From assembly GCA_900088475.1 (NCBI GenBank), contig FLMG01001670.1, positions 89,849 through 153,848 of the forward strand: a DNA stretch of 64,000 nucleotides, written 5' to 3'. Positions 6,001 to 64,000 of this stretch are shown here, one piece after another. The DNA is from Hyphochytrium catenoides. Its lineage: Eukaryota > Protista > Hyphochytriomycota. Numbering within the stretch: the first letter of the stretch is position 1; every line of letters starts with the position of its first letter. The notes beneath the pieces were generated by a model. That model was not told the origin of the DNA and ran no database searches. It saw only the letters and a program-made list of their open reading frames with translations. The translations under genes and the position numbers were made by a program.

Positions 6001-9000
6001 ATTTAGTACTTATGACAGGGCAGAGTGGATAATAGGCGCAGCTAATGTAGATCCTGAACAGGTTGGAAAGGAAGCAGATAATCAACCCTAACTCGCGAAG
6101 AAAAGAGCACTGAAGACATTGGTGAGAGAGAGCCAGGGCCACAATAGCGAGGACGCAAGACCAGCAATTGAGGAAGCCCTCTCCCATAAATTTCATGCCC
6201 AAAGTGAGATCGCCATCGGCACTTACCCGGCAAAGACGGCAGGGCGAATTCTATCGACAGCGGTAGCTCGGTTAGGTTCTGCAACATCTAAAGGGACAGC
6301 GGTCCGCTTAATTAGTGCAGCCCTTCAGTGTCTCTGGTAGGACAATTATGCTGTCTGGGCTTAACCCTTTCTATTTCCGCCTTCTCTTCCTGACACTATG
6401 GTACGGCACCATGTCTAGCCAGTCCTTACGCTCAGATCCCCGACTGCGCCCCTCCTAAGCTTCATCTGGGGACCTTACGTACCTGAAGTGATCGGACGAG
6501 CACGACCTTGCAGCCATGGCGCACCTCAACGTCTACAATGCAAGAGGCGGTTGGGACAGAAAGTCCCTCTATTATCTTGGGGTCCTCGGTAACCAAAGCG
6601 TACGATTTGCTCCTCACGACGTCCACGGGAATATTAGATATGGGCTTCCATCTAGACAGTTACAAGAGGCACGAGAGGAATAAGGACCTTAGGTATAAGG
6701 CGATACGGGTTTGTATCACAAATACCAAACAATTCACAAGTTAGATTTTGATACTAGCGTCCTTCAGCCTGGCGTCGAGAAAGGCGTGAAGCCGTGCCAG
6801 CTAGCGCATCCTATACCTTTTCTCCCCAAATCTCTCGATAGAGATTGATATAGTAGGAATTGTCCCATCAACTGAAGGCAAGGCACCTGAAGCCGTACGC
6901 TTCACAAGTGATCCGGCTCGGGCGGGTGCTCCACGGCCACCGTATAGCCGAACATCCAATGGAACCTTTTCGCCTGGTTCCACTTCCCTTACGACTGGGA
7001 TGGAGAAACGGTAAGGGACATCGAGCAACAAGCAATAATTAGAAAGGGGTAAGTATATAGAGACCCTTGATGGACTAGAGCTTTAAAAGGCTACAGTTCT
7101 CAGACCGGACCTCACCTCTATCTGTCCCCCAATACCACAACTTCACTCCCGTCAGATTTTCCACCCAATAGAGGGAGAAGGTTGACTGGTTCCGATCTTC
7201 ACTTCTCGTCTTTTGGGATGCAGACCATTGCCAGGCTCGCCGGGCACTCGCCAGAGTCTCCAGTAGTGCCTCACTGATGTTTAGGTTGAGTATGGTCTCG
7301 GAGGAAATCAGTAGAGAGGCGCCACTAGTGGGAAGTTCTCCTTGTGCATTAACCTGAAAATTGCAGCAAGAAAATAAGAGCACTGCTGGTATGTTCCATA
7401 GCTCTTTATATCGCCATGGGATTCTGCTTTAAAGAGGTAACACCGATCTTTTTCAAGGTATATATACGTGTGGGCTCTCTCTTCATCTGAAAAAGGTTGC
7501 GTGTGATATGGCTAGCGTTAAATTCTTACCGCGATCGGCTCCTCCATTCCTGGCCTAGCCAAGTCTGATACCTCCTCTCGTACCACATGGTACACTACAG
7601 TGCAGCACCAAGGCTCTATCAGGGGTTCCCAAGCGACCAATCTGAGACTATAGTAGTTCATTTGACACGAGAGGGACATTGTCAGCCTGGTCTGTATAGG
7701 TCCTTCTCCCTCACTTAAAAGGCCCTTGCCGTGAGGGTGGTCTTCCATCTCGATGTCTATAGGAGATATGTCCAAGTCAAGGACAGGCAAATCCTGGCCA
7801 TACAGGTCATTAATCAGGAGTACTCTAACACCCTCAACGGAGAGGGTGGCTTCCACTATTCCTCTCAAATCCCTTCTCCGTATGACAGTGTTTTCGGGAA
7901 CTCGTCGTCCAGGCTGAAGGTAGGAGGACGCTTCTGTCTCTTCTTTCTCCTTGACAGCCAGCAAAGGCCAGCCTTCTTTGCCCCTAAGCCTGGTGTTTTT
8001 GTTCGTTTGCTTGTTCATTCTTGCTACTTCCGCGGCTTCTATTCCGCTAAACATCCGCTGGAGATTTTCCATAATCTTTTCCATCATCGGAAGGTCTTGG
8101 AAGGCTATTCTGGACTCCAAATCCCCCAGCCGCCCTTCTACTTTCTGTTTCCATCCTGCGGTAGTTATCTGCTTTCCTTCTTCTGCCATGAAAGCGACTG
8201 ATGTGACAGAAAATGTGAGAGATGCGGGTCGAATTATTTGCCACATTGTCCCCTCACTCCTTTTCTGTCCTGGAGGGTCTAAAGGAAGTGAAGAAGATGG
8301 TCGCAGCGGCGGCCTCTGAACTCCCCTCGCGCTTTTGCCCGCATCGAGATGAGGGAAAAAAGAAATTCCCTGTCTGATCTCTGGAACACTAGAGAGTCTT
8401 AGGGTTTTGGGGGGCTCTTGAAGGGGAGAAGAGATTCTCGAAAAGGAAGGAGAGCCGCTTGCTTGTCTCCTAGTGGATTCTCCCGCCGAAGGTTCGAACA
8501 AGGGTGTCTGGGGCCTCAGCACTGGAGTAGATTGGCTCTCCTTGTATACAGCAGGGGAAGACATGAAGAAGGACGAGGAGCCGGGGGAGGTTCTGCCTAC
8601 AAACGCCTCTAAGCGAGAGCAAGAGATGGTGGAAGTCTGTACCACGGCTTCGCGAAGACAACCTATATGCATACAGTTCGTTACGAGCAAGCAAAAGTGC
8701 TGACGGAATATAGTAGCAGCAAAATGATGCTAAGAGAACGGCTGGACAGAGGCATATAGATCTTTACGCACGTTAAACCAGAGCGTGGTCGAGCCCAGAC
8801 CTTCGTGAAAACACAGCAATAAAGCTGTATATTGCCACCGCTTACTGTACCTTTCACATCTTCCTCACAAGGTTGTTGAACTTCAGCGGTTTTACGTATG
8901 TGAGAACTATGCAGACGAGCTGCCGGGTTGGATTTGGTTTGGATCAAGTTGATATCAGTGACTCTCGTTTCAAGCCCGAGATCTGCCCTTAGTACCAAAG

Positions 9001-22843: not shown

Positions 22844-25800
22844 ATGAGCCAGCTGGTGGAAGATGACTTCAAGTGCATTGTCTGCCTTGATCTGCCTCGG
22901 GCAGTGCGTTTCATGCCCTGCAGTCATGCACTTATGTGCAGGTAGGTTACTGCTTTCCGCTCTTACTCTCTCAGCTCCCAATTCTCATTAGCTCTAGCAG
23001 TGCTGACGCCAATCAGTGGATACATCGAAATGGGAAATGCCCAAACTGTCGAGCTGCCATTGAAGGCTTTGTACTCATAGAGAACCGGGATCCTAGACAG
23101 ACCTTTGTCTTGACAGACGAAGACGATAAAAGGGAGTTCCACCGCCTTATTGAGAGCTCTCACCGGTCAAACGATGGGGAGACTCTTTGGAATCCGGCGC
23201 CTTATGTTGACGCTCAGCTGCGATTAGGATCCGGATCAGCAATTCAAGCTCTCATTAGGGATAACCAAGCTGCTCTCTCGGCCGCACAGTATGCTCGAGC
23301 ACTAGCGAGAGAGAGGACTCTCCCACCTGAGGACACTGTGGGGATCATCTTAACGATGATGAACGAGAATATCGACAGCACCGTTCTTCAGGAGGCGGGA
23401 TGTCGGTGAGTCTTTAGGTCGTAATTTGCACTGCATTAAGCGCCTTCTCCAACTTTGTACTTAGTGCCCTAGGTGATCTGGCCCACTCCAATAAGATCTA
23501 TCAAACGTTGGTCCTACGGCAGGATGGCCTTAGAATCGTCAGTGAAGTTATCGAGAGAAACAAAGCCCAGATAGGTATTCAGAAATGGGGATGCTATGCC
23601 ATTGGTCTCCTAGCAGCAGGTCAGGTCCTTCCAGCATCTGGTCTCTATTCACTTTGATGTCTCACCTCTATTCTGATCGTTGCGCTGTACTGGCCCTCGG
23701 GTAAATGATGTAGGTTGTCCTGAAAATCAGCGGGAGCTTGCAAACCGCGGTGTGATTGGGACGATCCTAGAGACTATGGTCCAACTGATAACGTTGACTG
23801 ACTTGCACCGGTGGACTTTGTTCGCACTCGGCCAACTTTGCTTTAGAAATACGGAGAACCAGAACCTAGTGAAAGCGCTTGGGGGGATCAGCACGATTCT
23901 CTATCTTGTCTCGTCAAACCTCTATAACCCAGATATCCAACAACAAGGTAAAGAGTTGAGCAAATGATAAGGTCATAGGGTATTAGTTAGAGATACAAAC
24001 GCTTTCGGAGTTCGTAGACAGTTACCATCGTGAAAGGTGGAAGAGTCATATTGGGCCTTGAATGCTGAAGCCAGGTTTTCAATCCTTCCTAGCCTTATGG
24101 GTTATAGGAGAGCTTGCAGAAGGAAACTTGGAGACGCAAGTGACTTTGCAAGAGGAAGGCGTGGTTGAGACTATAATGGAGTCGATCCAGAGCCATCTTC
24201 TCAACAAAGATGTCCAACAATGGGGTTGTTATGCCATTCGAAGACTGGCAGAGAACAACCTGTCCCTTAAACAGAACTTTATTGATGCCGGTGCCCTTGA
24301 TGCGGTGAGCTCCTTTTCCTTCCTTTTGGCCCATAACTCTGGTCCTGAGATACTCTTAGCGCCCCTTGTTATCCGTGACTCCTTGGTCTCTCTTTATCTT
24401 TGACAACATGCCGACGTCATCTTACCACGCACTGTTGGGATTTTCGGCCCTGACTCTCTCTCCTACTATCTCTTTGCCTCAGGTAGCTACAATCCTCAAG
24501 GCTAGTCGAGAGGAGATGGAAGTGGCGCGAAGGGCAATGTCTGCTCTGGGAAAGCTTCTGACGGACAATCAGGGTTACCTTGCTTCCCTACAAGATGAAC
24601 AAACGATCTTAGTGCCTCTTCGAATCATGCAGGCGGGGGAGGAGGATGTGAACCTTACTATAGAGGCAGTCGCTCTAGTGTCGAGACTTATTTCCACGGG
24701 CGACGCGCAGATATGTAGCAATTTTATGAAGTTGGAAGGCCTGCAGGCAGTGACAGACGCGATTGTCTCTGAGAGGTAGGAAAATCAAATAAGTGCAGAT
24801 AGCTGACTGGATGCATGGTCTTCTCCCAGCTCCATTTACGGACAAGCAGTTCTTTATGTTGCTCCTATTTGTTGGTTACATGCTAGCTTCCCTTCGATGT
24901 TCTAACGGGACGCAGGCCAGTATAGCTGCCTAATGCATAGAGTCTAACGGCGGGCTATTTCTTTTGATAAATACTACAGGGCGGATGCTACCTTGCACAT
25001 GTGGGCTTGCTACCTGTACGGCAAGCTCTCGGAAAAGTCCTTCTCTGGAGATCAGTTTCTACCTGAAATACTTGCGTCCGGGCTTAATGCAGTCACAAAA
25101 ATTTTGTTGAGAAGAGGGGAAGATGAGCATGTCGTTAAAAAAGTATGCTATCTTTTCTCAAAATTCTGGATGCACCGCAAGATTTTCCACAAAGCTGTAA
25201 GACAGCTGGATCGAGAACAGATAGAATCTCTGTCAACCTCGTTTGTCAGCACTCTAACAGCCTTGAAGGACAAGCACTGCGTGACCAGGGATACTTTACA
25301 ATTGGTTGGTCGCCTGGCAGGTGTAAGCCCAGTTTTCAGTGCTTTTCTTGTACAGAAAGGTGCGTTCGAATCTGTTTTGAAGGCGATGGAATGCTGTTCG
25401 GACAGTGAAGAAGTACAGCTGTATGGTTGCTCTTGCCTTGCTAAGCTAGCTGAGGGAAGCAAGGAAGCTCCGGAAATGTTCTTCAGCTCTCCAGGTAACC
25501 CTTTCCTTCCTTTCCTTTGCGTTACTGTGACATTTGTCCAAGAAGATCCGCTTCTGCTCCGCACAAACTTCTTCAAGGTGCATGAACAACTCTTTTTTGA
25601 ATCCAAAATATTTAGCTAATCCTGTCTTACAACGTCATCCCGGCCCGCTGATGGTACCTCGCCGCTTTGGTTCCTATGTGATGAAAATTGCCCCGTGTTC
25701 TCCTTTCCCACGCTCTCTTCTCTTATGCATATGTAGGGTCACTACCCCAAATCATCTCTGTCATGAGGCGCTACTCGAGCCACAATGGGATATGTTCGAA

Positions 25801-27078
25801 GGCCTTAACCCTTCTCATAGAGCTCAATCCTGCCGGCGAGCGAGAGCGACAAGACCTTTATTTGACGGCGGGAGTACTGGAAGCTATCGGTTCCATTCTT
25901 CCTGGACTCAGTTCTCCTGAAGTGATACAAAAGAGCTGCGGTGTCATCACCCGTGCTGCTCGAAACAATGAAACTGCTCAAGTGAGACTGGCAAACCTTC
26001 TCACTGTTCCCAAGATAGTGCTAGGCATGCGACGCTTTGAAGACAACAAAGATTTGCAACAGTCTGCCTGTGCTGCCCTAGCACAGCTTGCTGACCGCTC
26101 TTTAGAAAACCAGCAACAGATCTTGTCGCAAGCAGAGGAAGGACGGGTCAGTGAAGCCGTCGCTGCTATTTTAGGGGCGATAAAACGTCATGCTTCCTCT
26201 GTCAGCGTTATTGTCAGCGCCAGTGCTGCACTGGGAAATCTTGCCCGAGGTTCCACTGTTAACCAAGAAGCGTTACGTACATCGGGGTGTTTGCCTCTTC
26301 TGCTAGATGCCTTGAAGCAACATGTAAATATTGCAAAGCTGCAAGAGAAGGTCTGTTGGGCGCTCTCACTTATCGCAGATGACAATCCTGCGGTCAAAAC
26401 TGACATTGGACTCTTGGGCGGAATTGAGTCGCTTGCCCTCTCTTTCAAGATCCACAAGCTTAATCCCCGCGTAGTGATGGAAATTTGCTACTGCCTTGCA
26501 ACGCTGTGTGACTATCATCCAGAGAATCAGAGCGTGATCCTACTGACCGATGTGGTACCTCTGATATCGGAGAGCCTCGAGCTGCACTCGGGCCACACCG
26601 ACGTGCTGCAATGGGGTTGCTATGCCATTGGGAAGATGTGCAGTGCGAACATGGATGTGCAGGAGGTGTTTCTGAAGCAAGGTGAGGCCATTACTCTGCA
26701 CATTATGTGGCTTCGTTCATATTTTGACGTGACGATCTTTTTGGAGCTTACCTCTTGTTATCCCCACTAACAAGAGCTCTCTCTCTTGTATGCCCTCTAT
26801 TTGGGGCTCCTTTTTGTATCTGGCGCTCACGCCCATTGGCTGGCTTAGGGACGACAGTGAAAGTGGTGCAAACAATGCGTCTTCATCCACAAGATGTTGA
26901 AGTACAGCGGAAGTGTTGCTATGCAGTTGCCTCCATGGCGCTGGCCAATGCCGACGCGCGGAGAGACGTGGTTGATGCGGGAGGACTCACGTGCATCGAG
27001 GAAGCTCTCAAGAATCATGAGAGCAATGAGAGGATTCGACATGTGGCCAGGGAGACACTGGCGCTACTGAAGAAGTAG
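22844..27078 (+). CDS. RING-HC finger + armadillo-repeat protein (putative E3 ubiquitin ligase), multi-exon
   Basis: MSQLVEDDFKCIVCLDLPRAVRFMPCSHALMC, intron, then SADANQWIHRNGKCPNCR. Followed by many ARM repeats (VQQWGCYAIRRLA, VQLYGCSCLAKLA, LQQSACAALAQLA, LQEKVCWALSLIA, VLQWGCYAIGKMC, VQRKCCYAVASMA). Stop TAG at 27076-27078. Confidence 0.88.
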
Positions 27079-33066: not shown

Positions 33067-35396
33067 CTACAGCTGCGGGTAGGTGACCAATGTGGGGTAG
33101 CGCATTCTCCAGGCATTCGCAAGATCGTGATATAGCTCGGGATGGTGCATCGCAAAAGCCGCAGAGTCCTCCGCAAAGCAAACGAAGATTGTATCAACTG
33201 CCGCTCCCAGCACGGTGAAGAAGACGGCTGCCCCCGCTGCAAAAGCGGCACAAATGCAAAGCGAGGGTCGGTTAGGACGCCTATGGCTGTAGGCCGCAAT
33301 CGAAGTTGAAGGTGAACTAGTGTAACACAAGCCAGATATTCTGAACGGCGGCAAGGGCTTCAAAAGGAGGGATGTCGTTCACTCACCAAGGCCAAGAAGG
33401 AAGCCTCCAACGCCCAGCGTGTATATGGCGCCGTCTGACTTGGCCACATCCAGCTGCGCCAAAACGACGCCGATAACAGCACATAACCCACCAATCAAGA
33501 CGGAAAACATGAACAGGACGTTGCCCACCAAGTCGTCAGAAATGATAGCGCTCCAGCCTCGAGCCTTAAACAGGTTGAAGACACTTTTGCAGGCATCGAT
33601 GTAGCCCATGCCATAAAGCCCTACAACGCAGAGTATAATAACAGAGCACAACGAGAGAAAAGAGAGTGAGTGACGGTTAGACAAGCAAGCACGTATGTTT
33701 CATGGCGAGGAAAGCACGAGATTGAATAAGTCAGCTCAAGCCACTATGCTCACCGACGTAGACAAAGCCCCATTTGTTGATGTACTCAACGATGGACTCC
33801 AGGCAGGCCAGAATGCACTGGGCGATGCAAGCAAGAAGGATTGTGATGACTGCAGTAAGAAGGATATGAATAAAGGTATGTTAGATGAGACGAGACTACG
33901 CGACGCACAGTGTGCACGCAGGACGAACCACACATACAAGTCTAACGTCAACACACAGAGCCAGTCAGCTTGATGACGATTCAGATTCTAGCCAGAGAGG
34001 CTTTACGCGGCAATTGGAGAGTTACGTCTCAGTGAAGAGCTACGTTTCAACGAGAAAAAAAGACTGTGGATGGACTACAGCATAAGAAAACGGTGCGAGC
34101 TTCAAAGAAACCGAAGCAGATTAAGGTTGTGAAAACGCTTACATCCATTGTCATCATCTGTTTGAGCCGAATAAGCCAGCTGCCGAAGTGTACTAATAAA
34201 GGCCAACACGAGCGAGCCGAAAGCCACCGAGCCCAAAGATGTAGTGACGGACCGGATGAACGCCGACATCGAGGTGTTCTTATACCCGCTGTTGTACCAG
34301 AAAGAGCCCATCACGCCCGCCGTGGTCACGGTGTTCAGACTGCGAATGGTGTAGGCACCGAAGTAGAAGGCAAGTAGCAAAAAAAAACCGCTGACTCCCA
34401 GCCATGTATTCTCACTCGAGTCGGAGCCAGGCTTGGTGTACTGTCTGTCGCTGTGATTGTAGACACCCAACACCGCTATGATCCATAGGGCGGTATAGGC
34501 GAAAAGAGCCACAGCAAGGACAACTGTTGACAAGTAAATGCCCCAGTACTTGTTTAATCCAGCGAACGCAACCCTAGGAGCACCACATAAAAACATGAGA
34601 GAGAGAGAGTGATGAAGATGGTGAGGGAGAGAAGAACCAGAGACACGAGCGGCCCTAGAGAAAGAGTCGTATAATGCGCCACATAACATCGTACAAAGAA
34701 AAAGAAGCTCATGCGAGAATATCGGCAAGGCCATTGGGCTTTGAGCGTTGGTAGGTGCAGTAGAGTTTGGCCATACCTGAATAGTGCGGCAGCAAACGGA
34801 ATGAAGCTTTGGACGGCCTTAAGATAGCATAACGCGATAAGGGCGAAGATGCCGAAGATTATGGCACCAATGTACTGGCCAACGGAGGCGTAGAGGACAG
34901 CCACCGCGATAAAAAAGGCCACCTCAAACCACAGGGCCACTTTGATAAAAACCTCTGGCTTCCAGTTCAGCAGAAACAAAGATGCCATGGACAGCAATCC
35001 AGCCAGTACCATGAGACCAACGAGACATATTAGCTCGTTGATCTGAAAATAATCTCCAACGCCGCTATCTGGCCGGTCCAGCTCGTTACTGACGGCTTCA
35101 AAGCCCCATATGATGGACAGAGCGATAATGGCCCCGACCGTGATGGCAAAGAGCGCTGCAAATATGGGATCTCTGGTAATGCAAGCATCATAGGCAGGGG
35201 AAGACAATCAATACGCAGACAATGAGTACACCTCTCATGACCTAATGAGAAACTGCACGCTTTACCTGCAGCCTGGCTTCTGCGCCTTTCGCTGCTCTAC
35301 GGCGGGATCCTTGTATGCCTCCTCTTCCATCATCATCCCTGGTGATGCGGCACCCATTTGCTGTTGCTGTTGTGGGTTATAATAGTTGTCCATCAT
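33067..35396 (-). CDS. Choline transporter-like protein (CTL/SLC44, PNS1-like), paralog 1
   Basis: GCR-DPIFAALF, multiple TM helices, SFIPFAAALF, VTTAGVMGSFWY, RSVTTSLGSVAFGSL, NKWGFVYVG-LYGMGYIDACKSVFNLFKARGWSAIISDDLV, AVDTIFVCFAED. Confidence 0.9.
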
Positions 35397-55689: not shown

Positions 55690-56970
55690 ATGGGTCTCGC
55701 AGTCAGTCAACCTTCGGTCCCCGGTCCAAAGAGAAGCGTGGTTGTCGTTGGCGGGGGATACGCAGGGGTAGCCATTAGCCAGGAGTTGGAAAGGCAAGGG
55801 TTTCAGGTCACGCTCATTGAAAAGAAAGACTATTTCCTTCATTCTGTCGGATCTCTGCGAGCTGTTTATCACATTGGTTGGGAGAACAAGGTCGTCATTC
55901 CCTATACCAACTTACTGAGGCAAGGAAAGGTGATACAAGGAGAAGTCTTATCTATCCTTCCTGACGAAAAGACGGTGGTGTTCTCAACAAATGCAGGAGA
56001 ATTAGCACCGGCAGGTCACGGGGAGCAAAGGATCGGGTATGATTTCTTAGTGGTTGCCACGGGAAGCCCCGCACCTCCGGCATTTCCTGCTCAACCGCCT
56101 CCATCGGCGCTCCATCGCGAGCAATATATTCAGGCTGTCTCTGCTTACAGAGAGGCAGTGAAAGGCGCAAAGAAGGTGGTGATCATTGGTGGAGGGCCAG
56201 CGGGAGTGGAGTTGGCAGCAGAAATAGCAGAAGGATACGGAGGAGAGAAAGAGCTAACTATTATACACTCTGGAAAGACTCTTCTCAGTAACTCGCTCCC
56301 ACCTCTAACGCCAGAGATGACAACAGCAGCGCTGCAGCGCTTAGCAAAACAAGGCATTAGGGTTCTACTAGAGGAGAAGGTGGACCTGTTAAAGTGGAAC
56401 AGCATAGCAAAAGAAGGAAGCCAAGCCTTAGGACTCTCCTATCACACTGGCCTCACAGTGGTAACCACCTCAAAAGGATCCGAGGTCCAGGCAGACATCG
56501 TCATCAACTGCATTGGGTCAGCGGGTCCTATGAATGGAAAAAGGAGTGCTCCTCCATTCCTTCCTGCTGCTTGGCTAGATGAGCAGCAGAGGGTTCGCGT
56601 CAATAACCATCTTCAGGTGTCATCGGTTACAGAAGGGAATGTCTTTGCCCTGGGAGACGTCACAGCCCTGTTAGAGACAAAGCTCGCCTATTATATCAAG
56701 GAGCAAGTTCCTATAGTGAGCAGAAACATCCTTCTTCTCTCACAAGAGGATGCAGAAGTTCACCGGGACGGGGGCAATTCATTGAGCACCTACAATGTCC
56801 ATGAGAGGGCTACAATGGCGCTGGCCCTAGGGAGTAAAGATGGCCTCCTTCAGGCCAATGGTAAGTACCTTGGCTGCCTGGGCTCGTTCATGATAACCCA
56901 AGCCAAAAGTAAGCAGCTAATGGTCTCGGAGCAGTGGAAAACCTTAGGGTTGTCTGCTCCCTCCTCGTAG
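55690..56970 (+). CDS. AIFM2: FSP1/AIFM2 (AMID)-like NAD(P)H:quinone oxidoreductase, N-myristoylation signal, intronless
   Basis: MGLAVS N-terminus, VVVVGGGYAG, HSVGSLRA, YDFLVVATGS, VVIIGGGPAGVELAAEI, TIIHS, RVRVNNHLQV, VFALGD, KSKQL. Confidence 0.85.
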   Translation: MGLAVSQPSVPGPKRSVVVVGGGYAGVAISQELERQGFQVTLIEKKDYFLHSVGSLRAVYHIGWENKVVIPYTNLLRQGKVIQGEVLSILPDEKTVVFSTNAGELAPAGHGEQRIGYDFLVVATGSPAPPAFPAQPPPSALHREQYIQAVSAYREAVKGAKKVVIIGGGPAGVELAAEIAEGYGGEKELTIIHSGKTLLSNSLPPLTPEMTTAALQRLAKQGIRVLLEEKVDLLKWNSIAKEGSQALGLSYHTGLTVVTTSKGSEVQADIVINCIGSAGPMNGKRSAPPFLPAAWLDEQQRVRVNNHLQVSSVTEGNVFALGDVTALLETKLAYYIKEQVPIVSRNILLLSQEDAEVHRDGGNSLSTYNVHERATMALALGSKDGLLQANGKYLGCLGSFMITQAKSKQLMVSEQWKTLGLSAPSS

Positions 56971-57360: not shown

Positions 57361-58248
57361 TCACTTGTCTGAGCGTCTATATGTCCAGAAGATGTCCGTG
57401 TGATGAGGGTACTCCACCATTTCCTTTCCCTCCTGCTTCGTAATGACCATAGAGCTTCTGTTCTCTTCCAGAACTTTCTCTGCATGCTTCCGACATTTCT
57501 CTTTCTCCTCTTCAGACAAGACGGAAATGTAACTCTTTGACAGCACGCGTCCCCAGATCATTGGAAACTCTATCTGCATTGTCCAGGCCACGTGCTCTTC
57601 CCTTAATGGAAGAGGAGAGAAGAGCTCACTTAGCAAACTAGCATTTCTCTCCTCGGTCCAGACTTTTTTCCAGGTGCCCTTGCGATACTGAGGGATGCTG
57701 TCATCGTAAACTTCATAGACTTTCCTTAGCTCAAGAACCCACCGCGCCTTGCTGGGATCCTCCATGTTCCAAAGCAGGATAAGAGGTGCTCCAGGCTTCA
57801 GAACGCGGTTCATCTCCGTTAGTGAAGCCATGGAGTCAAACCAATGGAAGGCTTGGGCTACTATAACAGCATCTACAGACTGGGCGGGCAGAGGAATATT
57901 GTCTGCGTAGCCTTCTATGATTGGGATCCCCAGATTTGCAGGCATTTTGGCCTTGAATTGCTCTCGCATCTCCGCCACCGGCTCACATGCTAGCAGGTCC
58001 CACTCTGGTGCGGCCTGAGCTAGCAAGCGAGTGCATTTTCCTGTCCCTGCGCCCAGGTCTAACACCCGAGGGCTATTTATTCCTTGGTTATGCTCCAATT
58101 GACGTTGATTGGAATGCCCTTTCTGAGCCTTGAAGGCTTCGTCAACAATCTTAACGACCCGACTTACAGCTGCCGGTGGGTAAGACGGTCGTGCCGCTTC
58201 ATATAACGCCGCTTGACGGGCAAATCCTTGTTGAGCTACCCGATGCAT
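57361..58248 (-). CDS. Class I SAM-dependent methyltransferase (Methyltransf_11 type), intronless
   Basis: YEAARPSYP, VLDLGAGTGK, EPVAEM, VIVAQAFHWF, EMNRVLKPG..LWN. Confidence 0.9.
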   Translation of the reverse strand: MHRVAQQGFARQAALYEAARPSYPPAAVSRVVKIVDEAFKAQKGHSNQRQLEHNQGINSPRVLDLGAGTGKCTRLLAQAAPEWDLLACEPVAEMREQFKAKMPANLGIPIIEGYADNIPLPAQSVDAVIVAQAFHWFDSMASLTEMNRVLKPGAPLILLWNMEDPSKARWVLELRKVYEVYDDSIPQYRKGTWKKVWTEERNASLLSELFSPLPLREEHVAWTMQIEFPMIWGRVLSKSYISVLSEEEKEKCRKHAEKVLEENRSSMVITKQEGKEMVEYPHHTDIFWTYRRSDK

Positions 58249-59253
58249 TTCGACTCTTGGCTCTGCAATAACTACCGGTCATACAACTCCATAAAGCCTC
58301 ACTCTTGCCTACTGACACTGAGGGTGAAGAGCTAGGTCCGAGGTGGAAGGAAGAACATGACACTGGTTAAACATAAAAAAGAGAGAAAAACCAGCGACTT
58401 CGTGGTGAGAGAGAGACCCACAGACTGATGATGGCTGATCAGATGATTGAGGGCAGAGAGCAGAGAGCAGGACACGACGATGACAGGTGAACAGAGCTTC
58501 ACCGGGAGACAGTTCCTAGCTTTGCTGGTGTCAGCAAGATGGAAAGTGAGCCAGGAGAATGAGTGTCAGTCACTTCAACCTTTGAACAGAAGTGACGCGG
58601 TGTGAAGAAGTGGTGAACGACACACGAAAATATAAGAAAACAACCGATCCCAAGTCAAGACAAAGGCCGAATATAAAGAGTCTTAGCAAACACTCCTATT
58701 CAGCTACTGACAGCTTCATCCCAGAATACGAGGCCTCAAGTACGAGTACTGAAATAACAAGGTTAATGGTAAGCATTCCCTAGAAAAGGCCTAAAGAAGT
58801 CCAGGAGGAGAGCTGGACCAAGGGACAAATATCTCACGAAGGAGCTTCATCATTTCATCATCTTCGTCTCCTGGCCCAGCAGCAGCAGTCTTGGGCTCTG
58901 ACAGGCCATCGCCGCTAAGACAAACGTCGGGATGCAGCCACTGGCCTGCCATGCGAGAGCAGCAGCTGCTAGGAAGGGTCATAGCGCTGACCTCACATGG
59001 CTCTGGAGGTCTGGGAGAGAGGAGGTGCATGCCTGAGGATGACAATAGAAAGCTCATTGATTTGGGACTTCTCGCCCTTACATGTGCGTTAGACAGAGTG
59101 CAGGTAGAGATAGTTAAGGAGACCAATAACCGACAGCAGACTATGTCTTGAATGAGTACTACCTGGCTTGTGGTCTCAATGAACAAGGAAAGGAAAAGGT
59201 TCCTAACAACTATCTTGACACGTTTTAGCGTAGACTTCTAAGGCCTTAGCTTG

Positions 59254-62200
59254 CTACGAGAGCGGCAAGAACTCATCGTTGACAAACATGTACTTAACAG
59301 TGGGCGAGATCGCTGGCGGACGTGCTCTGTCTCCACCGTCAACTGCCTTTTGCTGGTTAGACTTGGCTATGTGGTCAGCAAAGTTGTCATTAGTCACAAT
59401 TCTGCACTTGTGCTTCTCGGCGAAGCGGAGGAGGAAGAGATCATCGTCTATTCCCGCAGGGGTGAGGAAGAGAGTCTTCTGAGCCATCAGCTCGCGCAGA
59501 AGATCGACATCGTCTGCCAGGTTCTCCGTGTAGCGGCTACGAAGAGAAACGGGCGGAAAGATGATGAAGAAAGAAAAAGTGAGTACGACATAGAGGCTAG
59601 CTGCCCTGTCGACAGCAAAAGAGCTCAGGCAAGTGTAGAGAAAGAAAGAGCAGCGCAAGCAAGCGAGTAAGTGCGTGCCAAGAGAAAACTCTGGTCTTAC
59701 CTCTCCACGAACCGCTGGGGGAGAAATGCTACGGCCTTGACAGGAGCACTCTCACCAGCATTGTAATAGTCCAAGGCCAGTTTGACACCTTTAGCAGAGA
59801 AGTTTCGCTTGGCCGATGGCATCTTGGTATACCTGGCGAAGCGACATATGATAGAATGAGACGGGGTCAAAGGCGCAAAAAGAAGAGGAAGAGAAGGGAA
59901 GCAACGTTATGAAGGAAAGAGAGGCGGTAATCACCTGCCATGAAAGTAGCCTATGTTGGCTCCATCCAGCACCACCTCCGGATGGCCAGTCGCACCACTT
60001 CCTGGCGGGCTGACTGGAGGTGTCTTTGGCGGGCTGACGGGAGGTGTCTTTGTCTTGTTCTGGACATTTGGACTTGATATTTTTGCGATGTTATCGTCTG
60101 TTGGGGCGCCGGAGACGAACTCTTGTCCTTCTGCTCTGTTGTTTCTATTCTCGGCACCTTGTTGGGGCAAGGTACCTGGTAAAGGCTCAGGCATTCGTCT
60201 GGCCAGACTGCTTTGCCTAACATCTTTGTTCTCGGTCCGATGTCTGGAATGAGATATGCTAGGATGAAGGACGGACCCATCGCTGCTCTCTGGTGCGGGA
60301 AGAGGAGGAGGGAGGGCGATACGCAGCCTTAGGCGGTCTGCTTTAGCTGTTACCTCATCATCTTTGTTCTTGTGTCTTTCGTTTTCCAGCTGCTCAAGTT
60401 CTTCTTGTTTAGTCCCTAGCATCGCTTTGGCTACGTTCGCCTCTACGGCTTCCGTCGAAGAGGCCTTGAGAGAGTCTGCAGGTGTAGAGGCACTCAGAGA
60501 GGATACTGCAACTGACGTGAAGGGGAGGCGGACAGGCCTTGCCCGACCCGCTCCGTTGGGAGTTCCATGAGGAGAAGCAGACATGGGGAACGTCGCCTTT
60601 TTGGCGGAGGACTTGAGCTCCTCTGCAATTTTCCTCTCCAATAACTGCTTTTTTCTTCCTGCGGCTGCTATCGCCTCGGCCTCTCGTCCTGCCGCCTCCT
60701 CCGAGTTCTCATACCGGGCCTTGAGCTCTTCCAAGGTCACAAAATGTGAAGAGGTGCTCGTGCTCGGAGCCTTCTGCATAGCCCGTCTGTTCTCACTTGG
60801 CTTGATGGTTGTCTCCGCATCATCATCTGCTTTGTCTGACAAAAAAGAGGTTAGTTCTAACAATGGAGAATATCAATTAGCAACAAAGAATAAAATAGAG
60901 GTGAGATGGTCAGGGACGAATCCAAGCCCATTGGATGAACCATCAACAAGCGTTTGAACAGCGTGGGCGCTCAAGAGAATAATGGGAGACGTTGAGGGCT
61001 CCAGAGAATGAGAGAAAGTGGGACGAAGTCGAATTGATCAACACTGAAATCCATTCCATAAGGATCTCTGGTAAGGGCACCTCGAGATGTGAGTTTGGTG
61101 GCAGCTTTCCGCTGTTTCCGCGATTTTCTCTTCTTCTTGGTCACTCCGCCTCCCTCAACTTCTTGTTCGGTTCCTTCTTCAGTTTCAGCTTTCGAGAAGA
61201 TATCAGCGTCCTCTGCGCTTACCTCCGGCGCCGTCTGCCCCGATTCGTTCTTCTTCTCCATTGTCGCTTGTGCTATTCTCTGTTCCTTCTGCAGCTCTGT
61301 GTACCTCTGCTGAGCCCTCTTCCACCTTGATAAGCCTGTGCGCTTACTCCCCAATTCAACCAAGGTCTTCCACTCGTTGATTGAAAGACTAAAGAGAGAC
61401 AAAGAGTCAAGGACCCGAGCAAAGAGGTAGCATTTTTCTATCCGAACGATGCTCAAGGGCTTCTGAGCCTTGTTCACGTCAGGATACAGCCTCTCCACTT
61501 GCTGCAGAAGCATCTGAACCCTGAGGATAAAGGACAAGGACTTTTGCGATAAGGACTTGACTCCACTCCTCATCACAAGCACTTGAAGGTCAAGGAACAG
61601 AGAGTCGGGCAAATCAGGTCTACCAACGAGACGAAGAGAAGAGGTAACAGGAGAGACCACGATGGAAGAGCCATAGAAGAAACAATAGAACAGCACCATC
61701 TTCGGAGGGCATAAGTCCAACGTCAATAATGTACAAGAACTAGTCAAAGGGCAGCTGCAGTGTCTTGATACCTCTCACAATCGGCTCGAGCTTCCGGAAT
61801 CATCTTAATGCCAAAGGAGTACTCTGCCCTGGACAAAAATAGCTGAGAAGCGAGTGTCAAAAGGTAAACAAATGAGGGAGAGCAAAAAGAAATAAAGTTT
61901 GCATAATCTCCTACCTCCATCAACCTTAGAGTGTCTCTGAGCCCAACAGGAACGTCATCTTTCTCGGCAGTAGGAAGGACTTCTCCTCTGCTATCGATGG
62001 AGGAAGCTGCCACCAAGGCAAAGTCATAAGCGTTAAGCATTAACTGCCTTTGCAACTCCTTCTCCTCTTTCTCTTCTTCGTGGCCGAGAGTGCTCTCTCT
62101 GACAACGGCCTTCTTTCTATCTTCCACCAAAAGGCGTGCAAGTTTTATCCAGTCCACCGGCTTGAGCTCTCTTCCTAGCCCCTCCGCCTCTATCGCTCCT

Positions 62201-63380
62201 AATACCTTGCTATGAGCTAAGCGAAAGACTGATGGAATAACCATAACTTCTTGAAAGAAATGTAATACTGGGAGAGGGAGGCTCAACGACGAGAGAGAAG
62301 AGATATCCATGGTTTCCGGCACATCAGGTGCTAGCGCTGATGGGAAGATGTAGGAGCAAGGCTCTTTAACCTCACTCACTCCTACTGCCAACGCAGAGAG
62401 ACACAGTCGAAGGATTGGTTCTAGAAAGAGGCGGGCATCCCCCGAATCGGTCTCTACTATGTACCTGAGACTCCTCCCACACAGAGAAAAGAGACCGCGT
62501 CTTATGAGAAACAAGAGAATCTCTCTGTCTATGGAGGTCTCCTCTCCTCTCTGGCCCCCCACGTTCCTTCTATCTCGGACCATTGCAACGACAACCTCGA
62601 GGGCCTCTATCAAGCTCTCTTTCTGCTCTAATCCATGCTCTTCAGGCAGTTTCCAGGCCACGAGAGAGAGGAGGAGAGAGGAGAAGTCTTGAAGAAGGGG
62701 AGCGGCCCTGCGTCTTTCGATCCCATCACATTCGAGGCTCTTCAGGTTGATCTTTGGGTCTGCGGTTGAATCGAAAGTAAGGTAAGTGCTCCCATCCTTA
62801 TCCTCTCCATCCGCAGACTCCTTTACCGTCTTAATCTCTCTCTCTCTCTCTCCCTATCTCTCTCTCTCTCTCCCTCGCTTTCTCTGGTGCCTCCCGGACT
62901 TTCTTACGGTATCTAGCTACTCAGCTTGCTTCGCTTACCTTCGCTCTTCAAGCTGTCAAGTGTCAGCGGGCAGAGAGATGATAGGGCGATGTATGCAGAG
63001 AAAGGCTCATCGGAGCTACGCTTGGCCTCTCCTGCCTCGCCTCTTAACAACACTCGGCAAGTTCTCCCCCTCAGACCTTGTCCCTCTGGTCTAGAGCTGC
63101 ATCGTACAGCGATTCGCAGTAGAGGAAGGAGAGAAGGAAGGGGAAGAACAAGTGCTCCAGGAGGGAGCAGAGCCTTGAGTCTCGTTATGTCGTGCAGCCT
63201 CTGCTGTAGCGTGAGCAGCAGTGACGCCCGTGCACGATGCCAGTCACTGCGGCCGCGGTAGAAAGCTTGAATGCGAACCGCTGCCGTCCTCTGAACCCTC
63301 TGGAGCTCCCTCTGCTGCCGTTCCTCCCTAGCGCGCTGGAGGACAGCCTCTCTGCCTACGGGGCCGCGGCTGGACCTCAT
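59254..63380 (-). CDS. Spliced protein with a UBE3B/C-like N-terminal IQ segment and a C-terminal Zc3h12a/Regnase-type NYN (PIN) RNase domain; 5' end may extend to about 63855
   Basis: REAVLQRAREERQQRELQRVQRTAAVRIQAFYRG at the N-terminus. In-frame GT-AG joins link ORFs 62913-63380, 61744-62661, 60971-61747 and 59931-60863 to VVLDGANIG, FSAKGVKLALDYY, KAVAFLPQ, LFLTPAGIDDDLFLLRFA, IVTNDNFADH, KYMFVNDEFLP*. Confidence 0.78.
60003..60050 (-). repeat. 24-bp coding tandem duplication (KTPPVSPP x2)
   Basis: tggcgggctgactggaggtgtctt followed by tggcgggctgacgggaggtgtctt (plus strand). Confidence 0.85.
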
Positions 63381-63939
63381 TCTGGACGATGAGGGGAGAG
63401 CAAGAGCGGGAGGGAGAGCAAAACGGAGACGGGGAAAGGAGGAGGAAAAGAGAAGGTAGATGGCAGCAGCCTAGACACTCTCTCCTTTCTCTTTGCCCAC
63501 CGTCACAGAATGACGGGAGTGAGGATGTAGCGCCACTCGCGCCATCATTGCCTGTACTGAAGCCAGTGCTTGTCAGCCGCTGGGTCGCCCTGGAGCAGAC
63601 AGAGCGATAGTGCAGGCCAGAAGCGGTGTCAAGGGTCAGAAGTGACTGAGGATGGAAGAGAGAGGAAAAAGAGAGAAGAGGGAGAGTAGAGTCATAAGAA
63701 GCGAGGAGGATCAAGAGGAGGATGAAGGAGGATGGAGAATGAGAGAGACAGAGAGAGAGAGAGAGAGAGGGAGACAGAGAAGAGAGGGTGATGAAGTGCA
63801 AGTAGAAGGAAAGAATCTCTGTCTAACAGTACCCCAAGGATACTCCGGGCACCATCACAATTCACTTCACTTGCCCCCCTTAGAGGGGGATATATATCCT
63901 CTGATCTCTGATCGTATTCCCCCCCACCGTCACCACTCT

Positions 63940-64000
63940 GTGTCTCTCTTCCGCTCTCTCTCTTTCTCTCTTTTTCTCTCTCTCTCTCTCTCTCTCTGTC
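63940..64000. repeat. (CT)n/(GA)n microsatellite; similar tracts at about 48287-48316, 62836-62872 and 63741-63790
   Basis: Direct inspection of dinucleotide runs. Confidence 0.85.

Follow-up and report, generated by a model that had tools for sequence, protein, structure and literature searches.

In the 64,000-nucleotide (nt) window studied here, a stretch of contig FLMG01001670.1 from the protist Hyphochytrium catenoides (assembly GCA_900088475.1; positions below count from the first letter of the window), a minus-strand gene at about 59254-63380 has seven exons that join in frame across six introns, all of the GT-AG type. It ends in a domain of the NYN nuclease family that keeps the conserved catalytic residues of that family, and neither a HECT domain nor a CCCH finger accompanies it. 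We think that the gene probably encodes one protein of about 1070 residues, made up of an IQ-core helix, a helical scaffold, an acidic and polybasic stretch, a long disordered linker and the C-terminal NYN domain. Judged from this predicted layout, the protein would be an NYN nuclease in a new arrangement that is not known to have been described, and of moderate interest; for now it is a single, unverified gene model from a protist lineage that has been little sampled.

The list of open reading frames (ORFs) holds, in series on the same strand, frames of 155, 305, 258 and 310 codons and, after these, two shorter frames. Mapping the junctions between them gave introns of 72-245 nt and a spliced model of 3213 nt with a single, terminal stop, corresponding to 1070 residues (Table 1). 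A preliminary description made from the letters alone had proposed a multi-exon gene with in-frame GT-AG junctions, and all six of the rebuilt junctions agree with that proposal.

Sequence variation within the organism follows this exon structure. We compared X1, a DNA run from this organism, with the window over 59200-63600 and listed 40 differences: 25 fell in the 914 nt of introns, 10 in the 3213 nt of exons and 5 in the flanks. Variants were thus about ninefold denser in introns than in exons (odds ratio 0.11, Fisher p 6e-10), and the sole indel, of 1 nt, lay in intron 3. Divergence reached 5-7% in introns 2, 3 and 5 (5 variants in intron 2; 11 plus the indel, about 7%, in intron 3; 5 in intron 5), compared with 0.1-0.7% in exons 1, 2, 4 and 5 (for example, 1 in 442 nt of exon 1, 1 in 845 nt of exon 2 and 3 in 901 nt of exon 5) and zero in exons 6 and 7. 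The 71 nt of exon 3 carried one variant (1.4%). Codon log-odds, trained on the window's other genes versus non-coding sequence (a small training set), averaged +0.16 per codon over the exons and about -0.2 in all three frames of every intron, introns 2 and 3 included; exon 4 scored +0.25, and its sub-stretch 61347-61081 +0.38. The gene is real, and its exon/intron model is supported independently by variant density and codon usage.

Run X1 also yielded two contigs over 61622-61826, each at about half depth, one identical to the window and the other with 12 differences and the indel. Such a pattern points to two divergent haplotypes or strains whose introns differ by 5-7%. Three very small runs labelled as the same species yielded nothing. 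Long (CT)n/(GA)n microsatellites occupy 62826-62886, inside intron 1, where read placement was skipped as a repeat, and 63700-64000 in the 5' flank.

The same data bear on whether the locus is decaying or artefactual, as a pseudogene or a misassembly of unrelated pieces would be. A scaffold without a detectable homologue and the neutral codon log-odds of exon 1 (-0.004) would fit such a locus. However, the frame is undisrupted throughout the 3213 nt, the exons are depleted of variants relative to the introns, and independent X1 contigs (600-1070 nt) cover the listed stretches of the locus with no rearrangement, although none spans it whole. We consider decay or misassembly very improbable.

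The C-terminal domain was identified in Pfam scans, which covered the exons, or the six ORF pieces spanning the gene, separately. Exon 7 alone matched RNase_Zc3h12a (PF11977; NYN, PIN-like clan) at 36.9 bits (E 3.8e-9, profile positions 57-139 of 154), and the exon 7 ORF did so at 40.8 bits, against a gathering cut-off of 23 bits. The 56 unmatched N-terminal profile positions approximate the length of exon 6 together with the last 16 residues of exon 5 (HPEVVLDGANIGYFHG, 59935-59984). All the acidic residues expected at the active site are intact, in DGAN (D923, N926), IDDD (D1007-1009) and TNDNFADH (D1027, D1031); D923, in VVLDGAN, was read directly from the spliced model, its exon being too short for scoring. 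In a pairwise search of PDB, the solved sequences nearest to exon 7 were the NYN domains of PRORP2 (5diz and 5ft9, E 4e-5) and PRORP1 (4g23, E 2e-3). In these alignments GIDDD pairs with GSNDD and VTNDNFADH with VTNDEMRDH, which places D1008/D1009, D1027 and D1031 on the DD and TND..D blocks of PRORP. The same search gave no Regnase, N4BP1 or KHNYN chain at E<=0.01, and a word-indexed search with the last-exon ORF found nothing, a weak test in that its length window excludes full-length relatives.

No Pfam match to HECT was found in any exon or in the six ORF pieces covering the gene, and none to zf-CCCH, KH, CUE or PPR in any exon; the protein ends about 40 residues past D1031. A complete NYN domain with its acidic set at the C-terminus, and the lack of a HECT domain between it and the N-terminus, had both been claimed in the preliminary description, and both claims hold. 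Its label 'Regnase-type' is accurate at the level of the Pfam family only, given the missing CCCH finger and the proximity to PRORP1/2. From its residues and profile match, we regard the domain as a predicted catalytically complete NYN, a member of the Pfam Zc3h12a-like family, for which 'Regnase-type' says too much.

With Regnase-1/ZC3H12A, N4BP1 and KHNYN, the nucleases of PF11977, the protein shares the profile match and the acidic set of DGxN, DD and ND..D, which in Regnase-1 binds Mg2+. The surroundings of the domain differ. Regnases (ZC3H12A-D) carry a CCCH finger directly after the NYN domain, where this protein has only its short tail, and N4BP1, KHNYN and NYNRIN have one or more KH-like domains upstream and a CUE-like tail, neither of which was detected here. 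Unlike in these nucleases, the NYN domain here follows some 900 residues that have no known counterpart. The likeness to PRORP1 and PRORP2 is that of nearest solved sequence, with aligned GxxDD and VTND..DH blocks; the Pfam PRORP profile, however, reached 24-25 bits against a cut-off of 39.1, and neither PPR repeats nor the central zinc-binding module was detected upstream. To our knowledge this layout has not been described for any protein, and we found no paper in which 'NYN domain' and 'IQ motif' occur together.

Whether the NYN domain belongs to the same protein as the upstream exons turns on the junction between exons 4 and 5. We consider a single gene likely, and infer its single transcript from splice signals and codon statistics. 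The acceptor of intron 4 at 60836 combines a CTAAC branch box, a run of six T and CAG, the best such set in the gene, and an X1 variant at 60839 leaves a pyrimidine in the acceptor tract. The pair 61080-60836 is the only donor/acceptor combination that joins an AG/GT donor (the slash marks the cut) with the right phase. Codon log-odds across the intron are -0.17 to -0.21 in the three frames, and the coding signal fades at about 61090, close to the donor. Two other donors were tried and ruled out: 61347 with acceptor 60836, since 61347-61081 is strongly coding-like, and 61222, whose phase does not match that of the one good acceptor.

Several points weigh against a single protein of this architecture. 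Intron 4 starts from a weak donor (GTGCCC), and a perfect one, GAG/GTAAGC, lies at the out-of-phase position 61222. The earlier statement that every junction is in frame is true of the six rebuilt junctions but means little at exon 4/5, because dozens of GT/AG pairs in this region are in frame by chance. Diversity in intron 4 is 0.8%, against 5-7% in introns 2, 3 and 5. The codon tests at this intron use only 18-36 codons and the small training set. Exon 6 and the tail of exon 5 are too short for a profile score of their own, which leaves the first third of the NYN domain unscored. Finally, no orthologue confirms the architecture, the lineage being without close relatives in protein databases.

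The weak donor, the many chance pairs and the low diversity of intron 4, which could mean a coding tail or regulatory sequence, also favour an arrangement of two adjacent same-strand genes. The first would comprise exons 1-4, whose frame stays open for 36 codons beyond the donor to a stop at 60971; its product, of about 670 residues, would be helical with an IQ core. The second would begin at the first ATG of exon 5, which lies in frame (60779; MQKAPSTS...), and encode about 420 residues, a disordered N-terminus followed by the NYN domain. We hold this arrangement to be rather unlikely, although it is the strongest competitor of the single gene. Its 36-codon read-through tail looks non-coding (-0.129, below 99% of the 36-codon exon windows of the gene), whereas the 18 codons of exon 5 that lie upstream of ATG 60779 look coding: among non-coding windows, 0.5% of those in-sample and 4.8% of independent ones attain their log-odds of +0.285. 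The branch box, T-run and CAG described above stand exactly where an internal exon would start. Moreover, about 190 nt between the stop and the next ATG would have to accommodate a 3' end, a promoter and a 5' untranslated region (UTR), whereas the next tandem gene on the strand lies about 1 kb away (59254 to 58248).

Unusual fusions and orphan scaffolds are frequent in poorly sampled protist lineages. This lineage is poorly represented in protein collections, as judged from a well-conserved oxidoreductase encoded nearby (55690-56970, plus strand), because its best match is only 34% identical and it has no self match. That single-exon ORF encodes 426 residues with Pyr_redox_2, resembling the AIF/NDH-2-like oxidoreductases that use flavin adenine dinucleotide (FAD).

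The single protein favoured here would begin with an Arg/Glu-rich helix that ends in an IQ core. The segment REAVLQRAREERQQRELQRVQRTAAVRIQAFYRG corresponds to residues 10-43 of the ORF from ATG 63380, exactly as the preliminary description had quoted it, and includes the core IQAFYRG (residues 37-43, at 63252-63272). The core agrees with IQxxxRG; a Trp in place of the second basic residue breaks the full consensus [FILV]Qxxx[RK]Gxxx[RK]xx[FILVWY], and the Pfam IQ profile scored 14 bits (E 0.045) against a cut-off of 20.3. A regular expression for the core occurs once, and in 0.6% of shuffles by chance within the first 80 residues. In an AlphaFold2 (AF2) single-sequence model, exon 1 had an overall predicted local distance difference test score (pLDDT) of 44 and was confident only for the helix at residues 8-41 (pLDDT 82-91). 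Of the charged helix and IQ motif that had been described, the helix and the IQ core therefore stand, and the complete motif does not. The domain composition anticipated in that description, IQ and RNase_Zc3h12a but no HECT, was recovered in part by the scans of separate exons, with RNase_Zc3h12a present, HECT absent and IQ below its cut-off.

A further exon had been placed upstream of this ATG, at 63381-63560, on account of an F-x-DG...R-x-R pattern. Its coding status is not supported, and the segment is probably 5' UTR. The F-x-DG frame has no ATG anywhere in 63801-63381 and can be spliced in frame to ATG 63380, yet without a start codon of its own. One of the two X1 variants in the upstream region, at 63509, changes the Phe codon of that frame to Ser. 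Two ATGs, at 63548 and 63545, lie in a different frame, which stops after 24-25 codons unless it is spliced to 63355, and may represent either an upstream ORF or a candidate alternative first exon. Joining 63548-63479 to 63355 through a 123-nt GT-AG intron keeps the frame and adds MMARVALHPHSRHSVTVGKEKGE before REAVLQ.

Downstream of the IQ core, the predicted scaffold is lineage-specific and all-helical over some 500 residues, to about residue 560. An exhaustive phmmer search with exon 2 against 1.84 billion protein representatives gave no matches (E<=0.001), and the AF2 single-sequence model of this exon was all-alpha with a pLDDT of 45. Its Foldseek matches, syntaxin-like with a template modelling (TM) score of about 0.2, were dismissed as meaningless noise. 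The scaffold gives way to an acidic stretch and then, at the start of the linker, to the basic cluster KKKRKSRKQRK (found by regular expression at 61106-61138 in exon 4). The linker in exon 5 runs for about 300 residues, is polar and of low complexity with Glu/Lys/Ala-rich segments, and matched no Pfam family. Directly upstream of the NYN domain, at 59990-60050, it contains a direct duplication of KTPPVSPP, which carries proline-directed Ser/Thr sites.

The preliminary description had derived the N-terminus from HECT ubiquitin ligases of the UBE3B, UBE3C/Hul5 and plant UPL6/7 type. UBE3B and UBE3C are built of IQ, an Armadillo-like Bridge, a Hammer and HECT (PMC13693507; bioRxiv 10.64898/2026.02.09.704917; PMC7697756). 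The IQ motif covers residues 29-58 of UBE3B and 45-74 of UBE3C (PMC13693507), and Bridge plus Hammer cover residues 73-647 of UBE3B (bioRxiv 10.64898/2026.02.09.704917). In UBE3C an ancestral N-terminal strand docks on the proteasome (bioRxiv 10.64898/2026.02.09.704917), and a companion study cited in that preprint reports cryo-electron microscopy of proteasome-bound UBE3C. What our protein has in common with Hul5/UBE3C/UBE3B and UPL6/7 is an IQ-type motif that comes after a basic or charged segment, inside the first 60 residues, and precedes a helical region several hundred residues long. The differences are a scaffold without detectable sequence similarity to theirs, an N-terminal strand that is absent or uncoded, an incomplete IQ motif, and, with HECT lacking, a ribonuclease in place of a ligase.

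On this derivation the gene would stem from a ligase that had the strand, IQ, Bridge and Hammer, and NYN would have taken the place of its HECT domain to give a calmodulin-gated or proteasome-docked ribonuclease. The position of the IQ core, from residue 37 after the Arg/Glu-rich helix, fits the two family members, and the roughly 500 helical residues that follow have a length like that of Bridge plus Hammer. The sole positive hint came from Atlas, a language-model feature search, in which exon 1 adjoined IQ-bearing clusters of 'hypothetical protein' from Streptophyta and Ascomycota (160-167 residues, score 0.95-0.96, 195-207 features shared with exon 1). With the query cut to residues 48-147, which lie past the IQ core, the same clusters still came first (score 0.86-0.88). 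From their taxon spread these neighbours may be N-terminal fragments of UPL6/7 and Hul5; we treat the match as a lead only.

Against this derivation stands the sequence comparison, in which the homology claimed for the N-terminus and scaffold found no backing. In HMMER searches neither exon 2 against proteins nor exons 1, 2 and 4 against PDB (E<=10) returned a UBE3 or any other meaningful match, the presence of a full-length UBE3C chain in the PDB set being unconfirmed; a word-indexed search with exon 1 also found nothing, its length window again excluding full-length relatives. The IQ peptides of UBE3B, UBE3C and UPL6, tried as text strings, were not found in the literature. Such negatives carry little weight in so isolated a lineage, where a well-conserved neighbouring oxidoreductase is only 34% identical to its best match. 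In addition, the structure models are unusable for comparison, the IQ core lacks the second basic residue of its consensus, a charged helix with an IQ motif is a common combination, and the derivation also requires the single-gene model. Proteasome docking is unsupported, since the frame of the docking strand has no start codon. An origin of the gene in UBE3B/C-type ubiquitin ligases is not demonstrated. We judge the origin from such a ligase, with a calmodulin-gated or proteasome-docked product, to be unlikely, and a Hul5/UBE3C-type scaffold of IQ and helical Bridge/Hammer that lost HECT and gained a tethered NYN endoribonuclease to be less likely still.

For the single protein itself, the most likely mechanism is that of a Mg2+-dependent endoribonuclease. 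Its NYN domain, with the acidic set intact, would hang from the scaffold by the flexible polar linker of about 300 residues, and the choice of site or partner would fall to the scaffold and not to the nuclease. Localization or partner binding would come from the helical scaffold together with the IQ-core helix, to which calmodulin or a calmodulin-like light chain may bind. For the ribonuclease, gating by calmodulin and docking on the proteasome are purely conjectural.

NYN domains are delivered to RNA by CCCH fingers in Regnase, by KH domains in KHNYN and N4BP1 and by PPR repeats in PRORP. An NYN domain on a large helical IQ-type scaffold would be a different mode of delivery and could respond to calcium signalling. 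If the scaffold did come from Hul5/UBE3C, the protein would be a clear exchange of effector domains between the systems for protein and RNA degradation. Such a HECT-to-NYN swap would mean that the calmodulin-binding, substrate-selecting platform of a protein-quality-control ligase had been reused for RNA cleavage.

Table 1. Features of the NYN gene and of its 5' side, in window coordinates (slash, splice site)
Feature	Position	Strand	Residues	Description
Proposed upstream 'F-x-DG' exon	63479..63566	-		No coding support; probably 5' UTR
Arg/Glu-rich helix ending in IQ core	63240..63359	-	8-47	Pfam IQ, AF2, regular expression
Exon 1	62939..63380	-	1-147	ATG 63380 to donor GAAG/GTAAGC; 155-codon open frame
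Exon 2	61915..62759	-	148-429	All-helical orphan scaffold; open frame of 305+ codons
Exon 3	61772..61842	-		71 nt, between intron 2 (61843-61914) and intron 3 (61620-61771)
Exon 4	61081..61619	-	453-632	Scaffold end, acidic stretch, basic cluster
Intron 4	60836..61080	-		Donor GAG/GTGCCC; 3' end AACTAACC-TCTTTTTTGTCAG
Exon 5	59935..60835	-	633-932	310-codon open frame; linker, then NYN start
Exon 6	59701..59832	-	933-976	Middle part of NYN
Exon 7	59254..59536	-	977-1070	NYN core, IDDD and TNDNFADH; stop TAG 59254-59256

The next same-strand gene downstream, about 1 kb from the stop of the NYN gene, is a single-exon ORF of 295 residues for a class I S-adenosylmethionine (SAM) methyltransferase (Methyltransf_11/25; 57361-58248, minus strand). 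Elsewhere in the window, exon-sized ORFs mark other multi-exon genes at 7518-8690 (minus), 24993-26770 (plus) and 34102-34734 (minus), which match the middle region of VPS13, LRRK2-type ARM repeats and a choline-transporter-like protein, respectively.

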